From Paragordius varius (lineage: Eukaryota > Animalia > Nematomorpha): DNA of 64,000 bases. A program made the translations under genes and the position numbers. The stretch's first letter is position 1. Each line of letters begins with the position of its first letter. Shown piece after piece: positions 33,131-45,951 of the stretch. The notes under the pieces are model-generated. The model ran no database searches. It was not told the DNA's origin and saw only the letters and a program-made list of their open reading frames with translations. The stretch is taken from assembly GCA_964247055.1 (NCBI GenBank), contig OZ176059.1:310001-374000 (forward strand). The letters are read 5' to 3'.

Positions 33131-34782
33131 TTAATAAAAAACATTATACCATTTCCTAGGATTACAGGTGAGATAATAATCCTCAACATATTGGCATAAA
33201 CAAAAGTTACCTATAAGATCCATATAACAAAAATATTTTTTTCCCATATAAAATACGACAGTATAGTATAATTTTTAGTGGGTTCGTATATATATATAGG
33301 TTTAAAAATTAAAATTATACGGACAAAACGTAAGAATATGGTTGTTTTTTTATAAAATCAACCATATTTTTTAAACCATAATTCGCATATAATTTAATTT
33401 ACTATTTGAAATTATATAAATGATTGTTCTATTTATAACTTTGCAATTTTAAACAATGAATCTTGAAAACAATTAAAATTTAAAAAGTAGTAAATGGTTA
33501 CTATTTGTCTGTATAATTTATTTTTACTATATATCAATGTAAAACTAAAAAAATAAATTAATTTTACAAAAACATTGTGATTTTATATGAAATTTTGAAT
33601 AAGAAAAAAAATGTGTAATATAGATGTGTTTTTTTAAACCACACTCAATTATGTTATTTTCAATCGTAACTATTTAGCTTATATGGAAAAATTAAAATTT
33701 AATTTGTCCATATTTATACGTTTTGTCCATATTTTAATTTTCACTGTAATAATACCTTTAACGTGTCTTATAGTTTTGGATTGAGGTAATTCAGGATGAG
33801 GTATTGTTAGCCTACCTCTCATCATATTTTTAACGTAACCTTGTGAATTTCGTAGCAATAATTTTTCTGCATAATTCTATGAAATACAGTATAAATTGAT
33901 AAATTATAACGGACAAATAAACAAAAAAATATATAAAAACTTTTTTTAAAAACGACAACCAAATTTTTTAAAACCATAACTTATCCCCATATAAAACATT
34001 TAATTACTAACGTAAAATACATTATTGGTTGTATTACCAATATACATCTCTATTCAATATTTTACAGTTTTAACCAATAATTGATATTAAAGAAAATCAG
34101 GAATTAAAAAAGTATAGTTTTTTTCCCTACAAAAAAAATTGTCTTTATATTTTTAAGTTTTGTCCGTAAAATTTCTTTTACTGTATTAGTTGGTAATTTA
34201 TAATACATTAACACGCAATATACTATATTATATTAATATCAGTGTGCCCAAAATAAAACCAATGGTACGCACCCATTTCAAGATATTTTAAGGAAGCCAA
34301 AAATAAAATTATTTTTAGCAGTCAAAATTGATATACTACATACGGGTTCTCAGAACAAATGGCTTTAAGGGGTCGTACTATTGGCCCTAAAAAAATGGGC
34401 TGATGGCATTTAAGCACAAAAGTAATTGTAAATATTTTATTAGTTTTTATTTTAATGTTTTATGATAACATAATAATTATCAATATATACAGTATAAATT
34501 AATGAAATTATACGTACAATACGCGTAAAAAATATAAAGACAAACATTTTTTCCTAAAAGACAACCCTACTTTTTTAAACCTTAAATTTTTTTACATACT
34601 TTACTTTTTTAATGATATAATTAAGTTTATTGACAATTTACATATCAAATTCCTATTTTGCAACCCAAAAAAACAATAAGTAATATTTGAATAAATGGAA
34701 TTTGAAAAAATATGGTGTTGTCTTCAAAAAATATATTTGTCTTTATATTTTTGCGTTTTGTCCGTATAATTTTTAATTTTTA

Positions 34783-34818
<36 letters not shown>

Positions 34819-37800
34819 CAACAACTATTGCTAATTACTCGTTGCTAATGTTGAAACTTACAATAAATATGGTAAAAAGTTTCTTACCATCTAAAATTAT
34901 TTCTAAAACTTTACAGATAATAATATTTCTGAGTAAGGAACCGTAAATACTCAAAAATGCTATTTTGAAATAAAAGCTATGTTGATTTCGTATATAATTG
35001 GATATTGATTATTGATTCTAGGATCATAAAGTTTTTATTTTAAACAGTAAAAATCCAAATTATACGGACAAAATGTAAAAATAAAATGACAATTTTTAAA
35101 AGACAAAACTTTTTAAATCTTGTTTTTTTGTAAGCCACTGTTTAAAATTGTAAAGATTGTAATAGAGGCATATTAATAACGCAATCAATTATATATTTTT
35201 CAATTATAATAAATTATAAGAGGAGAATTAAGGTTCAAAAAAGCAGGGATATCCTTTGGAAAAAATTGTTGTTATATTTTTACGTTTGGCCCGTATAATT
35301 TGAATTTTTTACTGTAGTTGGAGGCTTTAAACCAGACCTTACATTCATGTAAAATATTATTTTGTTCTAGTTTAATTAAGCAAAGAATTACAATAACTTC
35401 TACAGATTAACTTTTTTTCTTCTAAGATTAATGAAAGCGGTGTCCAACATTAATTATTTCGCAGGCCGCATTTTTGACTCAAAAAACCAAATATTAAAGT
35501 AGATTTTAAACATAATATTGTAAGAGGCACACCCGAAAACAATTTCTTGATAAGTGCCAATTGGATAGACTTATTCAGAATTTTTAAAGATATCTAACTA
35601 AACTTTATTATTATGTGGGCGCAAATTTTGTGAGGGCATGTTATTGGACACCACCCCTGATTTATAGGTTCACAAATGTTTAACAAAAAATTATTTATAC
35701 ACGATAAAATTGGAGTCGGTAATTTGTCATGGAGTCTACATCGTTGGACGAATTCATGAATCCATTGCTTTTGGGAACCTCGTTGGGGACAACAGAAACC
35801 GACATGATTTGTTCAATATCATCGTTGACATTTTGCAAAGGGCTACTCGTTTCCAAAAATTTTAGGTGTTTCGTATGCTTGAAATCTATTAGCTTCTATG
35901 TTATGATAAAAAAAGAAACTCTGTATATATTAAGTCCGTATATTAGAGAAAAAATATAAAAATACAGTAAAAATTGAAAAAACAAATATTTTTTTCTGAA
36001 AGACAACCATACTTATTCAAACTTTAATTTATAAAGTATAACTCATTGTTAAAATATAATTCATTGTTTAAATTTGAAAAGTGTGATATAGAGATAAATA
36101 TTACTAAAACAATCCATTATATATATATATATATATATATACAATTGTTATTAAACAGCTTATTTATAAAAGTATGGTTATCTTTGTGGAAAAAAATATA
36201 TGCCTTTATATTTCTATGTTTTGTCCGTATAATTTACTGTATATTTAGCGTAGTCACACAAGTACATTAAATTTTTTTTTGGTGACCTTAAGAATCTCGC
36301 ATAAAAATCACGCACATATCCAAATTATAATAATCGTTTTTTTCATTTCAAAATTTTGTAATGGTTCACGTATAAAAAATATTTAATTTGATGTAATGAG
36401 GATACAAACCTTTTCCTTTAACCTTCGTTCTTGGACACATTTGCTAAGATATTCTGAGCACGGATTTAGATCGTAGTATATGACATGGATGTACACATGG
36501 CAAAATAGAGATATTTTATCATCAAATATTGGATTGATGATAAATTGAAATTTAGAGTTAAGAAAAAAATTATAATTGTCTGCTTTACAGTATGCATTTT
36601 AATGATTGATTGATATTTTACGCTATAGTTGGTCAATTTGCAACACAGTAGTATATGGACAACAAAATGTTGAATAAAATATACAAAGTGATGTAAGAAA
36701 GGAAAAAAGTGTTTATTTAACATTTCGTTGTTTTTTTTCATACACTAATGTGTTACAAATTGACCAACTCTAGCGTTGTGAAATAATCAACCATTAAAAT
36801 GCATACTGTAATAAAATTTTGCAAAACAAAAAATAATTTCTACATTTTTCCCATCTTTACTTATTAACTTGATCTGTTTATGGTAATGGTGTTTTTTAAT
36901 TAGGGAAGATTTTATTTATTAATCAAAAAATACAGAGTAAAAATTGAAATTATACAGACAAAACGTTAAAATAAAAAGATAACCATACTTTTTCACTCTA
37001 TAATTTATCCTATTGAAATCATTCAATAACAATCGTAAAATATGTAAATTGTGTTACCAATATACATATCTATACTTTAGCGCCTAAGCAATAATTTATA
37101 TTTTAATAAACTAAATTTTTAAACATAAAAAAATATTGTCTTTATATTTTTACGTTTTATCCGTAGTATAATTTCGATTTTTACAGTAGTTTGGGTAAAG
37201 TATACAACCATTTTATTTCAAATAATGCTAAGTGCATAATTAAAAGTATAGGGGTTAATTGAATTACTTGAAATTTTTTATCGTTTTTATAGCAAAAAAA
37301 CCGTTTAATTATAATATAAAACCTAACTTTATAGTTTGCAATATAAAATAAGTATTTTGCTTGCGGTTTCAGCATATCCTAGATATTAAATAATAACTGC
37401 CCCGAGATATTTTTTACAAACAAAGTTTCATATATAAAGATAAAAAATTGAGTTATATAAAGAACGAAAAAAAGGATATCAAAATTTTATGACAAGATAG
37501 CTTTCCCCAATCTTCCATACCCATCAGTATGTTCTTTTTGTACAATATACGATTTATACTGGACACAGCATCATCCAAATTATTGTTCATCTGATAAAAC
37601 ACGTTAAATAAAAGTTGTAAATTATTATATATAAAAAATCATCTCAGATACAGACAGTAACGAAAGCTTATAATTGGTTTCGATATGAACACTTTGATTC
37701 AAATTGGGGTATCTAGGGACCACAGACTATATTTATTGAAACAAATAAATACTTATTAGAAACGGTTACAGTTTGAATTTATGCTCATAACCAATAAAAA

Positions 37801-40800
37801 CTATATAAATATGTCAAAATATCTAAATAAAATTTAGTTTGAAAAAAAAGTTACATATCAAACTCCTTTGACGTCATTTTTATTTTACAGCATTTTTGCA
37901 AAATATCGTGTTTATTTGATTTAACGCTAAAATTAAAGCTATTTTTTTAATTTAAATCACAACATTTAAATAAACAGAAAAAATGGTTGATATTACATTA
38001 TTTTTATATTTTGCTTCTCATGACAACTAAATTTTTACCTTTAGGTTTATCCATTAAATAAGTAATAAATTCAATTTTATATAAGTGCAAACTATTACCA
38101 TGGTTTCATTTTATTCCAAACTTTTTTAATATTTGATTTTAAACAAGCCTAAACCCCCTAAAGACCCCAATTTGAATTGGAGGACTGAACATATATTGTT
38201 GTATCCAAGTGTTAATATCAGCTGAAAGGTTATTAATATACATGTGAATTATTTTTTTCATATCTGATAGGAAAGAAAAAGTACAATAGAGCCCGTTCCT
38301 AAAGAAATATTATCTTAGCATTTATTTTAACACTTGGATACAACATTCATAGCAATTCGATTCGAATTGGGGTACTTGAATACCCCAGGACTGTTTAAAA
38401 TTAATATTTCAAAAAATATGGAATAAATTGAAACCATGGCAAAAATTTGCACTCATATAAACAAAAATATTTAAAAAAGTTTATTCAGAAAAACTTGATA
38501 TTACTTATTTTAAGGCAAAACCACAAGGTAAAAATTTAGTCTACATGACATGTGTGCTTTTGCTAAATTAAAAAATATTACAAAATACACCACTTTTTCT
38601 GTATATATTACTGTTAGATGTGATTTAGATAAAAAATTAGCTTTAATTTTTTTTAAAAATAAATAAACATTTCGCAAAAATGTCGTAAAAAAATGGTGTC
38701 GATGTAGTTTGATATGGAACTTATTTTTCAAAACTAAATTTTATTTAAATATTTAGGCTTATTTATATAATTTTTATTGAGATGGAAGCATAAGTTTAAA
38801 TTAAGACTGTTTCTTTCAGTAATTTTTAAAAACATATACTTAAATATAGTCTGGCGTATTTAGATACCCCAATTTGTATCAAAAAGTTAAGTTAATTAAA
38901 GAATAAAAATAAAAAATATAAACCTTTTACCAGCAGAAATCTAAATAAAATTCTTTTTTACCCAATTCAAAAACCAAAATAACCAAGTTACTGTAATATA
39001 AAGTGAATAATCCACACAAATGTGAATAAAATTATGCTAGAGTATTTAATACTAATTACTTGATAGTATATAAAATAAAGAGCAATTCACAAATTTTAAA
39101 GTATTTAAAATACAATTATTAGATGTGTTAAGCCTCCACCTCCTATGCTTTTGATTTTTAAAAGATGGCCCCAATTTTTATATTCGTTCAAAGAGATGTT
39201 ATTTTAATGATTTTATTGTTATCATTTCTTTTATCGTATCGTATACTCTATTTAATAATTAGACATTATTCAAAAAATAAGAAATTCAGTGAATTTTAAT
39301 TAGAAAAATTATTTTAATATATTTCAAAAACAGGTCATGATGTGGGTAGAAAGACATATATTTCTCTCCCACAATCAAATACTTGAGTGATGAATCTTTA
39401 CTCTAAATATATACTTTACTCAAAATCACCCTCGAATAAATTCAAATCAACCTTAAAATAAATTGTTTGGAATAATAAAAATTACCTATATTTTTCTATT
39501 CTAAAAAAGGAAATTGCGCTCTATATTAACATATTAATTGAAAGAAATAATAGACTATAGCAAAAAGAAATTCATATTAATGATAAGTTAGCCGCCCGAA
39601 AACACATAATTTATATTAGCCACCCAAAATGAATTTGAATTGTTCAAGGATAATTTTGAAGTGTAAATGGTATACTTACCATTTTTTTGAACACGAGGCA
39701 AACAAGCAGTCCTATGGTATTAACAAATAACCAAAGCAGTCCCATGGCAAAAAGGACGACACCACCCAACCCTGAAAACAAAATACCCAAAAGAATGGCA
39801 AATCCAAACAAGAGCCATGTGGACAGGATTCGCTTGTAACACATAGTATACGTGGTGAATCTTGCATCGTTACTTAATAATTCGATGGCTAGGCTGTAAT
39901 CATCGGCTGTAATCTATCATTTTTATTTAATTTTTATTGTGAATGTAATAATTGATAAAAAATGATATGTACAGTAAAAATTGAAATTATACTAAAGGAT
40001 AAAACGTAAAAATATAAAGACAAATTTCATTTTTTTTCAAACGATAACACATCATACATTTAAAATATTAATTTTTTTATATATCTCATTGTGTTACACT
40101 GCAAAGTGTGAAATTGAGATGTATATTGGTAACACAATCAATTACATGTTTAAATGTTATTAAATAATTATGATAGTAAAAGATTTAAAAAAATATGATT
40201 GTCTTATGATAAAATTGACATATTTTTACGCTTTGTCCGTATAATTTCAATTTTGCTATATATATATATATATATCAATTATGTAATCATAACATAATTG
40301 AATAAATTAAGCCACATTAGTTGAATTTAACATTTGAATGTGGTAAAAATTGTTTATCACTAAAACCTATGACAAAAAAATAAATATAAACGGTTTCAAA
40401 ACGATAAATTTTAAAAGCGCACTGTAAAACCATATTGGTTGGTATTTTATTTAAACTGACTTCGTACAGTCAAACCATTTTTGATCAGACTAAACTGCCA
40501 TTTTTTTATTTTTATCGTTTTCATAATGTTGTTTCAATGTTAAAATATTTAATTTTATGATGTGGATGATAAACCAATTTTTTAAAAAAATTAAGCGAAT
40601 TAAACTACCTAATTCTATATGTTCAATAATCAGTATCTAGTATAACTGAATAAAATGTTAATCAATTGATTTTTATTTTTTGTTTATTAACTTTTTTAAC
40701 ACAAGAAGATTAAAACCAAAACAGTGCGTTACATGGACTATATGTATTAATTGAAAAAAAACCATAATATTTACTTTGAGTTTAGGATCTAGGATTTCTG

Positions 40801-43800
40801 GAGGTACATGGGTAGAATTAAATTTAGCTGGGGTCAACCATACGCATGAATGTTTTTCTGGATGTACTGAAACGATCAAATCGCCTGACACTATTATTTC
40901 ACAATATTATTATATATAGAAAATTTCTTTTTAACATTATAATGATGTCGAACTCGTTCACAATTTATTGATACGAAACTGCTTTGAGCTCAATGGTTTA
41001 AACTGATGGTTTATTTATTAGGTACCTTTAATCTTAAATTAAAAAAAAGGAATTAAAACTGTTTATTTTTGTTCTTGTGGTGTAGACATAAACACAAAAC
41101 GTAAAAAGTAAAAACACATTTTTTTCTCAAGAAAACAATATTTTTCTTTCTGTTTTAATAGGGAACTTAAATGTTTACAATGTAAAATTATAAAAATCGG
41201 TGTGCATATGTATCAGATATGGTTTTTTTACGATAAAGTAAAGGTACATATTATTACTTAGAAAAAAAAACGTATTTATCTGATAAAAATTAAGAATTTA
41301 TTAATTTTCGAGAATTATTGTTCAATCTTTGTCAAATAAAAAAAATATAATTTAAAATTAATGAATCACATTAAATACAAAGATCCAATCTCACGTAAAT
41401 GATTACCATGTACATACCAAGCCACGTGTTCATGTGACTAAAAAATATATTGGAGAAATTGGAAAAGGAAATGCTATAAATTGTGAAAATTAATATTAAT
41501 TAATTTAATCGAAACTACAGAATAATAGCTATCACCAATAAATCATCCAAACTTCTTCTCAAGATAAACACAATTCATCCCCTATTGATGAAATTTCTGA
41601 CGTTCAGGCTGACTTTAGATCAAAGCGAAACACTACTAATCACACAGTCCGTATTAATATTATAATTCATATATAGGGCCTGCTGAATAAAAACAAGCAC
41701 CTACTGGGTAGTAGGTGCTTGATAGTATGTACCATTTTTTGAAAAAACATTGAATAAAAATAGGTACTTACTGTCATGTACGTACTTAAGTTTTTAGTAT
41801 GTGTAAAATGTTTATTTTCATTTTGTTTTTTTGTTTGTTTTCGATTTCATTCATAAAATGCGTTTGAAAAATTTATAATGTAAATTAGAAAGTCTAACCT
41901 TTGGAAAATAAATATCGATTATCAACCCATTATTATTTAAAAAATGCAATTATTAATACACATTTATTTATAAATACACAAAAAATAAATTAAAATAATG
42001 TTTGAACAATTAAATCTCGTTTCATTTTGCCAGCCTTGAGTATTTGGGTTAGATCAATATTTGTTTCACAATCCTCCACATATTCAATATCAAAATATGA
42101 ATTACTTTCGAAATCTGTTAAGGGTTCGTTAAGATATTTGGATACATTATGTAATATGGAACATGTTAATATAAGTTTTGGGATTCGTTCTAGACTTAAA
42201 CGAATTTCGTTACCAAGTATAGGAAATCGGGTCTTCATCTGACCGAAAACCCCCGCTTGATAATGCTTTTTTCAGAACAATGTAATTTATGGAATTTTTT
42301 CTCGTTATCGATCATCATATTTTTGAAGGGGGTTAGGAGCCAGGGTGATAGTGGACATCCATTATCACCTAACAAACAGAATAAATCATTTTGTTTGCAC
42401 ATATATGACTGAACAATCGTGTTTCGCCATATCCTTGAATCATGGCCATTGTGCATCCACAGATGTAATTTCTTGATTGGCATTACATGTGAATTGTACA
42501 TTGAGGGTACATCGATCGACCCTTTCGATTTATATAGGCCTCAACATTTTTAGGTCTTAATATTTCAAAGTGTGAACAATCAATGCAACCAATAGCAGTT
42601 GACATTTTATATTTGGATAGCCATAATTTATTCGCCATATTAAGCTCTTCAAATGACTTGGGAATTTTTACCCAATGAGATTTTGATACTATTTCGTCCA
42701 TAACTTTAGGTATAGTTTTGCATATGGAACTATGAACATTAAAATCATGTCCTATACCCGCTTGATATCCCGGATCTCCAAGAAATCTTAACGCAAAATC
42801 TAGATTTATGATATTTTAAATACCTCCATTCGCATCCTGGGAGTTAGTTTCCTTAAAGATATATTTAATTTTTAACCAAAATATGAAAAGGTCATTTTAT
42901 CTTAGCCATAACTCAAATTTGAATAAATCTGTGATTTTTTATATAGAAAATAGCTTCATTCAAAAATATTCACTCAAATATATAAAATTTAAATGTTTAT
43001 AAAATAAAATTAAGGTCATTATAAAGTATATAAACTCAAATATTTTACACAAAAATGAAATAATCGAAGAAAATGATATGTTGTGGACATTCTTGAAAAA
43101 AAACCAATATTTTTTAACAAAAGTAATAATCTCTTCTAATTGAACTTACAAAGCTTAAAATAGAGAAGGAAAAAAATTATTATTAATAATAAAACAAATA
43201 ATATTTAATTAATATATTAATAAGTTTATATATATATATATATATATATATGAATCATGTAATTTAAAAAAACATTTATCTTAGAAATTTTATAATAATA
43301 TAACCGATATTATTTTAAGTGAAAAAATAATAGTTTAAAATGTTGCCATTTACCAGCTTAAAAAAAACCAGTAAGTACTAGGTAAAATTTGTAAAAAGAC
43401 AATTTTTATTCAATGATATTTGTCAGTAAATACTGGTAAACATAGTACGTACTGGATAGTAAAAGCAATATATTTTTTTATTCAATACATAGATAGCATA
43501 TACTGGAAAAAACCTAGTTTTTAGCATATACTAGCTTTTATTCAGCAGGCCCATAATGAATTCGGTAAAAGTTTGTACTGCTGTTTTGGACTTCAGTATG
43601 GCATGTGACACAGTCAACCACGATTGTATCTGGAAGATTTTACAATCTTCCGGAGTTTTCTCCAACATAATACTTATGTTACAATCGTTATATAGACAAA
43701 CAGCGGCTACGATCAAAACACAATACGGTTCCACCGACTGGTTCCCCATCCTCAGAGGTGTCAGACAAGGATGTGTCCTTTCTTTCTCCCCTCGTTGTTT

Positions 43801-45951
43801 AATTTATACAATGAAACATTAATTCGCAATTGTGAATTTCCTAAATATATTAGAGCGCGCATTGGTGGTAACTATAAGAAATCTCCGATACGCTGATGAT
43901 ACAGTTCTCTTGATGGAATCCCATTCGGACATGATTTCAATATTAAATAGATTTACAGTCGGAGCAAGTTTGATGGGTCTGAAGCAAAACCCATATCGAA
44001 ATCTATATTCATGATCCTCAAGGCCCCCAAATACCATTATCACTCACTACTGCTCTATCGACTTAACCGATCTTTGTAGGTATTTAGGTTCAATAATTGC
44101 ATCTGACGACACTTCAGATCCCGATATACGAACACGGCTTTTAGGACGTGCTACCCTGGGCAAGCTTTTCAGAATTTGGAACTCGGTAATAAGAGTTCAA
44201 CCAAAGTAGCCATCCTAAAAGCGATGGTAACCCTGTTGCTACCTACGGATCTAGGTCATGGTTTTGTAAATCCACTGACAAAGCCAGAATCAACTCATTT
44301 CAAATGTGGTATTTCCGGTAAATTTTTGGTATTTCCTGGAACCACATCTCTAATTCATATATACTTAAATTCCTCAAACCAGATTCTTACTTTATGATCT
44401 AGTGATCTACAAGCAAATAAAATGTCTGGGCCACATCACACCTTCCGATTTGATTCCTTGAAAAAAAACGTTTTCCTTGGGTCGGTCGATGGGACTCGCA
44501 AAAGAGGCCTCCCTAAAAAGCGGTTTCTAGATATCATCAAATGAGTTACTCACCTTACATCTCTCAAATGATTCGAAAGTCACGATGAAAACACTGATTT
44601 ATGAGAAAGCTAAGAGTCGCTACGCGTCTAGCTTTTAAGAAAAAATATTAATTAATTTAAAACAAATCCAGATAACATCTAAAATTTTGCATTAAAATAC
44701 CTTAAATATCATCCCATCAGGATTTATTTTAATTTATTTGTAATTTTCTATTTACTTGAACACAAGACTCAAAGAGCACAACTCATACATTCGCAGTAAT
44801 ATAAATAACTGTCAGGCTTGTCATAACACATATACACGGTAACAAAAACACAAGCTTTAAAACGGATGTCATCACTAATATCGTAAAACCCCATTAAACG
44901 ACAAATACGCGAAGCAATTATCAAAAAATGCAAAGGTAAATTCAAAAGAGACGATGGTTTATTGTTGTCGTCAATCTGGGACGGACTGCGCATTTGCCTA
45001 ATTGCCAGATTTATTAATTTATACACTATATCACAAAGTTAATGTAAGGATAATTACAGATTTTTTTCATAGATTACCTTTCCCCACCTATATAAGTGTA
45101 AGAAATTTACCACTTCATCCTGCTTTTTATGCGAAAAGTAGTGAACAATATTACTCGAAAAATGATCCTTTTAAATTCAAAAAACGCATTTAGTCTTTAT
45201 TATTCAATAATAAAATAGTAATTTTTACTTTTAACATGTTGTCTTTATTTTTAACTTTAAAGAACTTTTACTGCTTAAACAGGCAATTATGAATTAACTA
45301 ACCATAATTGTTTAGGGTTGATGAATTGCCACCAGCTGTAGAATTTGGGTCATTTAACATTACGATGGATGGATTGATGTTAGCGGAACGGTTAGAGCGG
45401 GAAAAATATCCTGGGCCTCCTACGCCCCCCTTTACCACATGGTTAGGAGGCAAATTAAAGTGTGGATATGGATTGAATGGTGCATTAGTTATAACTGGGC
45501 CCAAATCTTGTTTATCAAACATGCGTTTAGATTTGACTTTGGTGTTAATTTGAAGGGTCTCATTACTATTCAAGACCCGTGGGTCAGTATTCGATAAAGG
45601 TAGCGTTGTCATGTTAGTAAAACCATTGGTGGAAACAGCATTCAAACTTTGAAGAGAATTAAATCCGGAATCTAGATTTGTTTTGATATTGGTATTGGTA
45701 TTGTCATTACTTTTTTGTTTATCCTTTTGTTTTTGTTTTTGCTTTTTAAATTTATGATATCGATCGTCATTATTTTCAATACTTTCATTATTTTTATCAT
45801 TAGAGTTACCTACAAAATTGGATTCCATTGTTTTATTAGGCTTGCTAACTTCTTCTGTGCTGTCATTCGAAGTACCACTGATATTTTTGACATTCGTGTC
45901 ATCAATGGGCACACTGACAAATGAATCATCAAATTGTTCTTTTCCTTCCAT
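33131..45951 (-). CDS. TMEM268: Transmembrane protein 268-like, 607 aa; exons 45951-45303, 45025-44789, 40890-40775, 39913-39680, 37590-37480, 36490-36410, 35895-35701, 33876-33756, 33210-33131
   Basis: The spliced frame (1824 nt) reads ...WLTPAKFN..VPPE...DDY.LAIELLSND.RF..Y.MCYKRIL..W (two TM helices)...LMGMEDWGKLSCHKIL/IHVIYYD..PC...AEKLLLRNSQ...RH..GNFCLCQYVED, matching invertebrate TMEM268 as I recall it. Seven introns are GT-AG and one is AT-AC. Confidence 0.85.
36491..37479 (-). other. U12-type (minor spliceosome) AT-AC intron, 989 bp, phase 0
   Basis: 5' site TTG|ATATCCTTTT matches the U12 consensus and the 3' site is GTGTAC|ATC. This is the only junction found that keeps the conserved CHKxxxxxIYYD motif in frame. 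Confidence 0.85.
36588..36808. mobile_element. Foldback MITE (TA|CAGTATGCATTTTAATG...CATTAAAATGCATACTG|TA)
   Basis: Perfect 17-bp TIR with TA on both sides and internal pairing. A second right end is near 53975. Confidence 0.8.
37690..38211 (-). mobile_element. piggyBac-like non-autonomous element (inverted partner of 38331-38890)
   Basis: Ends GTTGTATCCAAGTG|TTAA at 38198-38215. Confidence 0.7.
38331..38890 (+). mobile_element. piggyBac-like non-autonomous element
   Basis: Starts TTAA|CACTTGGATACAAC. Colinear with the copies at 29038 and 63004. Confidence 0.7.
41676..43552 (-). mobile_element. PIF/Harbinger DNA transposon, TIR-bounded (1877 bp)
   Basis: Perfect 17-bp TIRs GGGCCTGCTGAATAAAA / TTTTATTCAGCAGGCCC with a 3-bp ATA direct repeat on both sides. 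Confidence 0.9.
41990..42850 (-). pseudogene. Harbinger (HARBI1-like, DDE_Tnp_4) transposase pseudogene
   Basis: Fragments LRFLGDPGYQ..., AIGCIDCSHFEI.RP...YINRKG, GHDSRIW, LLGDNGCPLSPWLLTPF, RFPIL...LILTCSILHN lie in different frames. Confidence 0.9.

Follow-up and report, generated by a model that had tools for sequence, protein, structure and literature searches.

Major (U2-type) introns can have branch points lying far upstream of the acceptor, separated from it by an AG-exclusion zone, and the acceptor used is then the first such dinucleotide after the free tract. The AT-AC introns of the U12 type in animals, for example the conserved one in PHB2, have a /ATATCCTT donor, a TCCTTAAC-like branch site complementary to U12 and a YAC/ acceptor (slashes mark splice boundaries), GT-AG termini being dispensable. 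A review names the 5' splice site and the branch site as the only defining features of U12 introns and describes a typically short spacing between branch site and 3' splice site, with an optimum of 11–13 nucleotides (nt) (PMC3584512). PHB2, SUDS3 and TMEM41B stand on human and mouse minor-intron lists, and since TMEM268 (C9orf91), whose mammalian form belongs to the same DUF4481 family as the gene described here, is absent from these possibly incomplete supplementary lists, it is, as far as they go, not a recognised minor-intron gene in mammals (PMC6717393). A literature search found no paper linking Nematomorpha with the minor spliceosome or U12 introns. Here, we analyzed a probable AT-AC intron in a TMEM268 gene of the horsehair worm Paragordius varius, located in a stretch of 64,000 nt (GenBank assembly GCA_964247055.1, contig OZ176059.1, positions 310,001 to 374,000; hereafter the window, the numbering of which is used throughout).

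The intron spans positions 36491–37479 of the minus strand (989 nt; first base 37479, last base 36491), and it is very probably, judging by its boundaries and the protein that they restore, a genuine AT-AC intron of the U12 type and the fourth among the coding introns of a single TMEM268/DUF4481 gene, with a position and, very probably, a 5' motif shared with the horsehair worm Gordionus and a branch most likely at A36558. At the donor boundary tcataaaattttg is followed by atatccttttttt: the upstream exon closes with the codons GGA AAG CTA TCT TGT CAT AAA ATT TTG (3' end CATAAAATTTTG), and the intron opens with ATATCCTTT or, at greater length, ATATCCTTTTTTT. All nine bases of the /ATATCCTT consensus are present (9/9), directly at the codon where homology stops, and the stretches CCUUUUU and UCCUUUUU of the intron find their complements in the U11 and U6atac boxes. 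Three copies of RTATCCTTT are present in the window, the chance mean being 3.0 (about 2e-5 per position), and as this count equals chance, the donor motif is meaningful solely by its location at the end of homology. The acceptor boundary reads ...ccatgtgtac / atccatgtcatatactacgat, with TTTTGCCATGTGTAC closing the intron at 36491 and the downstream exon opening with ATCCATGTC (codons ATC CAT GTC ATA TAC TAC GAT). When 37480 is joined to 36490, the product reads SCHKIL/IHVIYYD, in which the SCHK-x6-YYD spacing is kept without an indel. The strict, indel-free pattern (SCHK, six residues, then Y/W-F/Y-D/N) was found in 163 of the 176 SCHK-bearing homologues, while 8/176 have the same spacing with a single substitution and 5/176 are model artefacts at this very position.

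A GT-AG replacement for this junction was rejected, as no pair keeps the SCHK-x6-YYD spacing: the downstream exon is preceded by 65 nt free of AG and itself shows its first AG after YYDLNPCS, and the sole nearby GT donors would either disrupt the Cys codon of SCHK or lengthen the upstream exon by 20 nt. The first-pass annotation of the window had proposed this very intron, a read-through stop within about eight codons and the lack of a GT-AG pair restoring the motif, and each of these statements agrees with the boundaries, the restored junction and the survey of acceptors and donors reported here. Its numbering of the upstream exon as exon 5 has to be corrected, since according to the map of eight exons this is coding exon 4 and the AT-AC intron is coding intron 4, not 5, placed between coding exons 4 and 5.

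For the exon map, the Gordionus orthologue P0125 (420 amino acids (aa), XP_065325088.1 / CAK9291390.1, LOC135931739) was aligned to the window and the boundaries were then read, with homology searches made exon by exon. The eight coding exons (Table 1) total 1587 nt, i.e., 529 codons, in consistent phases, and the remaining seven introns of the gene are all GT-AG. A phmmer search with coding exon 3 (39680–39913, minus strand) retrieved 122 homologues (best 95 bits), the top ones from Gordionus sp. m RMFG-2023, the closest relative; among the names of the homologues were 'transmembrane protein 268-like' (Varroa), 'C9orf91 homolog' (Haemonchus) and, in many insects, 'Transmembrane protein 268'. 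Single exons scored 14.8 and 12.5 bits with the DUF4481 profile (PF14800, cut-off 25), whereas P0125 reached 45.3 bits in one stretch spanning the junction, and the profile abuts across it (121–158 in the upstream exon, 159–183 in the downstream one). The upstream exon lies within a 61-aa open reading frame (ORF) piece that covers profile positions 121–164, and the two exon pieces translate to MNNNLDDAVSSINRILYKKNILMGMEDWGKLSCHKIL (upstream) and IHVIYYDLNPCSEYLSKCVQERRLKEK (downstream). The identification as TMEM268/DUF4481, already made in the first pass, is thus supported by P0125 and by the names of its relatives. A homologous-protein search with the 61-aa piece gave zero candidates, and a profile built from the fragment homologues yielded mostly insect matches, without a model boundary at the junction codon. 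Six-frame genome searches with PF14800 and PF08598 returned no match and also missed the known exons, being insensitive to short exons and therefore uninformative.

The intron position was compared in TMEM268 orthologues, as set beforehand, and the junction of P0125 was found at the same codon (SCHKIS/LHFVYYD). The exons of the two worms are 58–90% identical; Gordionus is a different species, and its assembly is far larger (a single contig measures 93.7 Mb vs. 110 Mb in total here). A second Gordionus isoform, P0001 (300 aa), continues after SCHKIS with ISFFFITDN and a stop, and I-S-F-F is the translation of ATA TCC TTT TT., as encoded by ATATCCTTT. P0001 is, by this translation, a retained-intron isoform, and Gordionus very probably carries the same donor motif. 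Two more models, P0123 and P0124, are C-terminal fragments beginning inside the next exon. The expectation, voiced in the first pass, that GT-AG-only annotation would break the gene is already borne out in Gordionus, because P0001 retains the intron and P0123 and P0124 are fragments. Gene finders restricted to GT-AG introns will split or truncate TMEM268, and both outcomes can be seen in the Gordionus records.

The annotated intron-retaining isoform of Gordionus would also suit a different explanation, in which the AT-AC intron is removed by the major spliceosome, or in which the gene is decaying and its product ends at the read-through stop. Introns of the AT-AC kind that belong to the major class carry U2-like donors, whereas ATATCCTTT is the U12 consensus, and against decay, none of the eight exons is disrupted or out of phase, the last two being 80–90% identical to those of Gordionus. 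We regard this explanation as barely credible.

The genome was also found to hold candidates for the specific small nuclear RNAs (snRNAs) of the minor spliceosome (Table 1), in line with the first-pass view that this lineage retains the machinery: U6atac and U11 score above their Rfam cut-offs, and the U4atac and U12 candidates fall below theirs, having kept conserved functional 5' regions and Sm sites. In the whole-genome Rfam search for U12, none was found among the 42 scored of 10263 first-look candidates, and the U12 candidate was located, at one locus, when the pattern of the conserved 5' end was searched for. The first 30 nt and the Sm site of this candidate are near-consensus and its middle stem-loops have diverged, which accounts for the low score. 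The U11 gene is 248 nt long vs. 134 positions in the Rfam model and contains two large stem-loop insertions, with AAAAAGGGCUU and the Sm site kept.

In the proposed splicing route, U11 and U6atac would recognise ATATCCTTT, U12 would most likely pair with TTTCTTAACTC, leaving the A at 36558 bulged, and the second step would take the first AC downstream, TAC/ at 36491, joining ...SCHKIL to IHVIYYD.... Removal by the minor spliceosome, the branch point used and the tolerance of the 67-nt spacing are inferred from these signals. The core of the branch motif, TTCTTAAC, lies at 36564–36557. With GAGUAAGGAAA of the U12 candidate, no site in the last 120 nt of the intron pairs better than the TCCTTAAC-like TTTCTTAACTC (-9.1 kcal/mol), in which the A is bulged, the canonical geometry, and a single G-U replaces a G-C; 0.25% of background 12-mers score as well. 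Between this motif and the terminal AC, neither AC nor AG occurs, the upstream bound being the AC of TTAAC itself, and an AC/AG-free run of this length starts at 0.5–0.9% of the window positions. The tract fits a route in which the branch site is followed by splicing at the next AC. In all but the branch-site distance, the intron is an ordinary member of the known U12 AT-AC class. The free tract also resembles the AG-exclusion zone of U2-type introns in its far-upstream branch site and in an acceptor dinucleotide that is the first after a tract devoid of it; it differs in that a minor intron and an AC acceptor are concerned and that the likeness is read from sequence alone.

Table 1. Features of the TMEM268 locus and snRNA loci of the genome; positions refer to the window unless a sequence label is given
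Feature	Position	Strand	Score (Rfam cut-off)	Remarks
U12-type 5' splice site ATATCCTTT	37471..37479	-		further T after it; complementary to the genome's U11 5' end AAAAAGGG and U6atac AAAGGAGAGA box
In-frame TAA	37453..37455	-		read-through of the intron gives ISFFSFFI (8 codons), then stop
Best branch-site candidate TTTCTTAACTC	36555..36565	-		branch A 36558, 67 nt before last intron base
Tract without AC or AG between branch motif and terminal AC	36493..36556	-		64 nt; single copy in genome (self match only)
3' splice site TAC/	36491..36493	-		AC acceptor; frame and conserved protein block restored
Coding exon 1	45303..45951	-		ATG at 45951; ends AATTATG/GTTAGT, phase 1; 217-aa ORF; similarity to Gordionus N-terminus weak
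Coding exon 2 (GDLIVSVHPEKHSCVWLTPAKF...)	40775..40890	-		GT-AG flanks; 74% identical to P0125 residues 140-177
Coding exon 3, transmembrane block	39680..39913	-		phmmer query; 58% identical to P0125 residues 177-256
Coding exon 4 (exon 5 of the first pass), MNNNLDD...GKLSCHKIL	37480..37590	-		phase 0 at both ends
Coding exon 5 (exon 6 of the first pass), IHVIYYDLNPCSEYLSKCVQERRLKEK, then GTTTGT donor	36410..36490	-		DUF4481 profile 159-183, 14.8 bits
Coding exon 6	35701..35895	-		GT-AG flanks; NDDIEQI...TNYRLQFYR parallels Gordionus NDDFEEI...TNYKLNNYQ
Coding exon 7 (NYAEKLLLRNSQGYV...RHVKG)	33756..33876	-		90% identical to P0125 residues 355-395
Coding exon 8 and stop (NFCLCQYVEDYY...WYNVFY, stop)	33131..33210	-		80% identical to P0125 residues 395-419
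Dispersed repeat with terminal inverted repeats, like a miniature inverted-repeat transposable element (MITE), ~253 nt	36936..37188	.		19-nt arms, 95% complementary
Second MITE-like dispersed repeat, long hairpin, ~231 nt	36584..36814	.		81-nt arms
U6atac	C2:4857045-4857187		66.3 bits (33)	AAAGGAGAGA box intact
U11	C5:11395495-11395742 (L004:1501-1748)		62.7 bits (39)	5' end AAAAAGGGCUU
U4atac	C4:4407422-4407525		50.7 bits (53)	
U12 candidate	L007:1377-1527, G000:C5	-	34 bits (53)	begins GUGCCUAAAUCUAAUGAGUAAGGAAAAUAA; Sm site

The same U12 intron could instead use a degenerate proximal branch point, either the A of TCTCTAT 15 nt upstream of the acceptor or that of TTTGAT 31 nt upstream, with TTTCTTAAC being a chance motif. 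Distances of 15–31 nt fit both the spacings of the other U12 introns of this genome and the published constraint, and in AT-rich intron sequence, motifs resembling TTTCTTAAC are not unusual. Within the last ~45 nt of the intron, however, no U12 duplex is stronger than -5.0 kcal/mol, a value matched by 8% of background 12-mers, and it is precisely at the distal motif that the AC/AG-free run stops. Because the tract leading to the 3' AC is without AC or AG, we favour the distal TTTCTTAAC and consider a proximal branch point possible but rather doubtful. The first-pass annotation had likewise seen no convincing site near the AC and had placed the distal motif ~65 nt upstream, which is 67 nt by our count.

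The distal TTTCTTAAC might also be paired by the minor spliceosome with a non-canonical CAA/ acceptor at 36545, ~13 nt downstream, which would add the 18 in-frame residues FIINPIFDDKISLFCHVY to the main or an alternative product. Such an acceptor is in phase 0, its spacing to the branch site is the textbook one, U12 introns with non-canonical termini have been described (PMC3584512), and the frame of the downstream exon is open for 36 codons into the intron (36491–36598, minus strand), about as far as the upstream exon is long. At this base composition, an open frame of 36 codons has a probability of ~4%, for which reason it is weak evidence; a similarity search for a coding role of the extension gave no significant match, and the 18 residues would be inserted in a block without an indel in ~170 homologues, Gordionus included. 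We consider use of this acceptor very unlikely.

A branch at A36558 followed by splicing at the AC of 36491 has several points to answer. The 67-nt spacing lies far outside the 11–13 nt optimum (PMC3584512), and it is the longest among the few U12 introns examined here (others 9–35 nt). Motifs as complementary to U12 are expected by chance in roughly 10–20% of 100-nt stretches, the exclusion-zone statistic is a post hoc observation, the candidates for U12 and U4atac are below the Rfam gathering scores, and the intron ends in Gordionus were inferred from protein isoforms and not from DNA; all of these count against the interpretation. As for the displacement of the branch site by a repeat, the 114 nt around branch site and acceptor are single copy and both MITE-like repeats lie upstream of the motif, so that the spacing is not accounted for by a recent insertion.

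Other U12 introns of this genome were examined for the same distance, with exon calls for PHB2, ZNHIT1 and the short candidates resting on open frames or on our own reading. The PHB2 intron (L038, minus strand, 660 nt, starting at minus-strand position 2417) reads GKL/ATATCCTTT, CCTTAAC and TATAC/IGEAVSKNPAYLKLRK; its branch site is 25 nt from the acceptor, AC and AG are absent between them, and the first AC is used. In the AT-AC intron of ZNHIT1 (L035:676-935; G000:C10:382175-382434), the donor ATATCCTTT is accompanied by TTTCCTTAAC, located 35 nt ahead of the acceptor AAAC/G, the sole one that keeps the HIT zinc-finger frame. Use of either of two earlier ACs, at 23 and 29 nt, would bring a stop at once, so both have to be bypassed and the 'first AC' rule does not hold strictly. 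When short introns were searched for by pattern, 18 matches were obtained vs. 10 in a reversed control, the ORF-compatible ones being spaced 9–29 nt. Candidate U12 introns of ~60–80 nt with ATATCCTT, CCTTAAC and flanking open frames were noted at L040, L045, L048 and L056 (G000 C1, C3, C5 and C9), with branch-to-acceptor spacings of 9–19 nt, and L040 resembles an SRSF10-type intron. Set against 25 nt in PHB2, 35 nt in ZNHIT1 and 9–29 nt in the short candidates, the TMEM268 intron would stand at the extreme of a spacing distribution that, from these motifs, looks broader than the vertebrate one.

It is conceivable, as a tentative proposal, that the horsehair-worm minor spliceosome has lost the tight branch-to-acceptor spacing and uses A36558 and then the first AC after the 64-nt AC/AG-free tract. 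If true, the minor class would have its own equivalent of the AG-exclusion zone seen in major introns, with the 25-nt and 35-nt spacings of PHB2 and ZNHIT1 as milder relaxation, and a real 67-nt spacing would provide a natural experiment on the strictness with which the minor spliceosome gauges the distance between branch point and acceptor. For Nematomorpha, the set of minor introns would gain a gene that is not on the mammalian lists.

Outside the horsehair worms, model artefacts were found at the same codon in Ixodes pacificus (P0026, continuing V-S-L-L), a Logan contig (P0027, continuing V-I-T), Rhipicephalus microplus (P0032, following exons skipped) and Angiostrongylus costaricensis (P0105, exon skipped). 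This coincidence of model boundaries in ticks and a strongylid nematode suggests that the junction codon is an old intron position in Ecdysozoa. The V-S-L read-on is compatible with both GTATCCTT and GTRAGT, so the protein cannot tell the intron class, which may have changed between lineages.

The two intronic MITEs noticed in the first pass were recovered as dispersed repeats with inverted arms. At least 40 near-full-length copies of the repeat at 36936–37188 (70–78% identity, from 2061 first-look candidates) and at least 40 full-length copies of that at 36584–36814 (76–83% identity, from 1140 first-look candidates) were found, and both would have landed within the intron with its signals untouched; without them the intron measures ~505 nt. 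A duplicated exon end, proposed from the likeness between DDKISLFCH-VY at the intron end and EDWGKLSCHKIL at the end of the upstream exon, was rejected, the DNA local alignment scoring 8, which is equalled by 23% of random 45-nt windows.

Further traces of mobile elements were seen in other introns of the gene. Intron 1 (45302–40891) contains broken pieces of a Harbinger-type DDE_Tnp_4 transposase in several frames (41990–42701, minus strand) and, on the other strand, reverse-transcriptase (RVT_1) fragments (43556–44014, plus strand). In intron 3, the motif 'taccccaattYgaatc' occurs twice (37690–37725 and 38355–38395, minus strand) in opposite contexts and probably marks a third MITE family.

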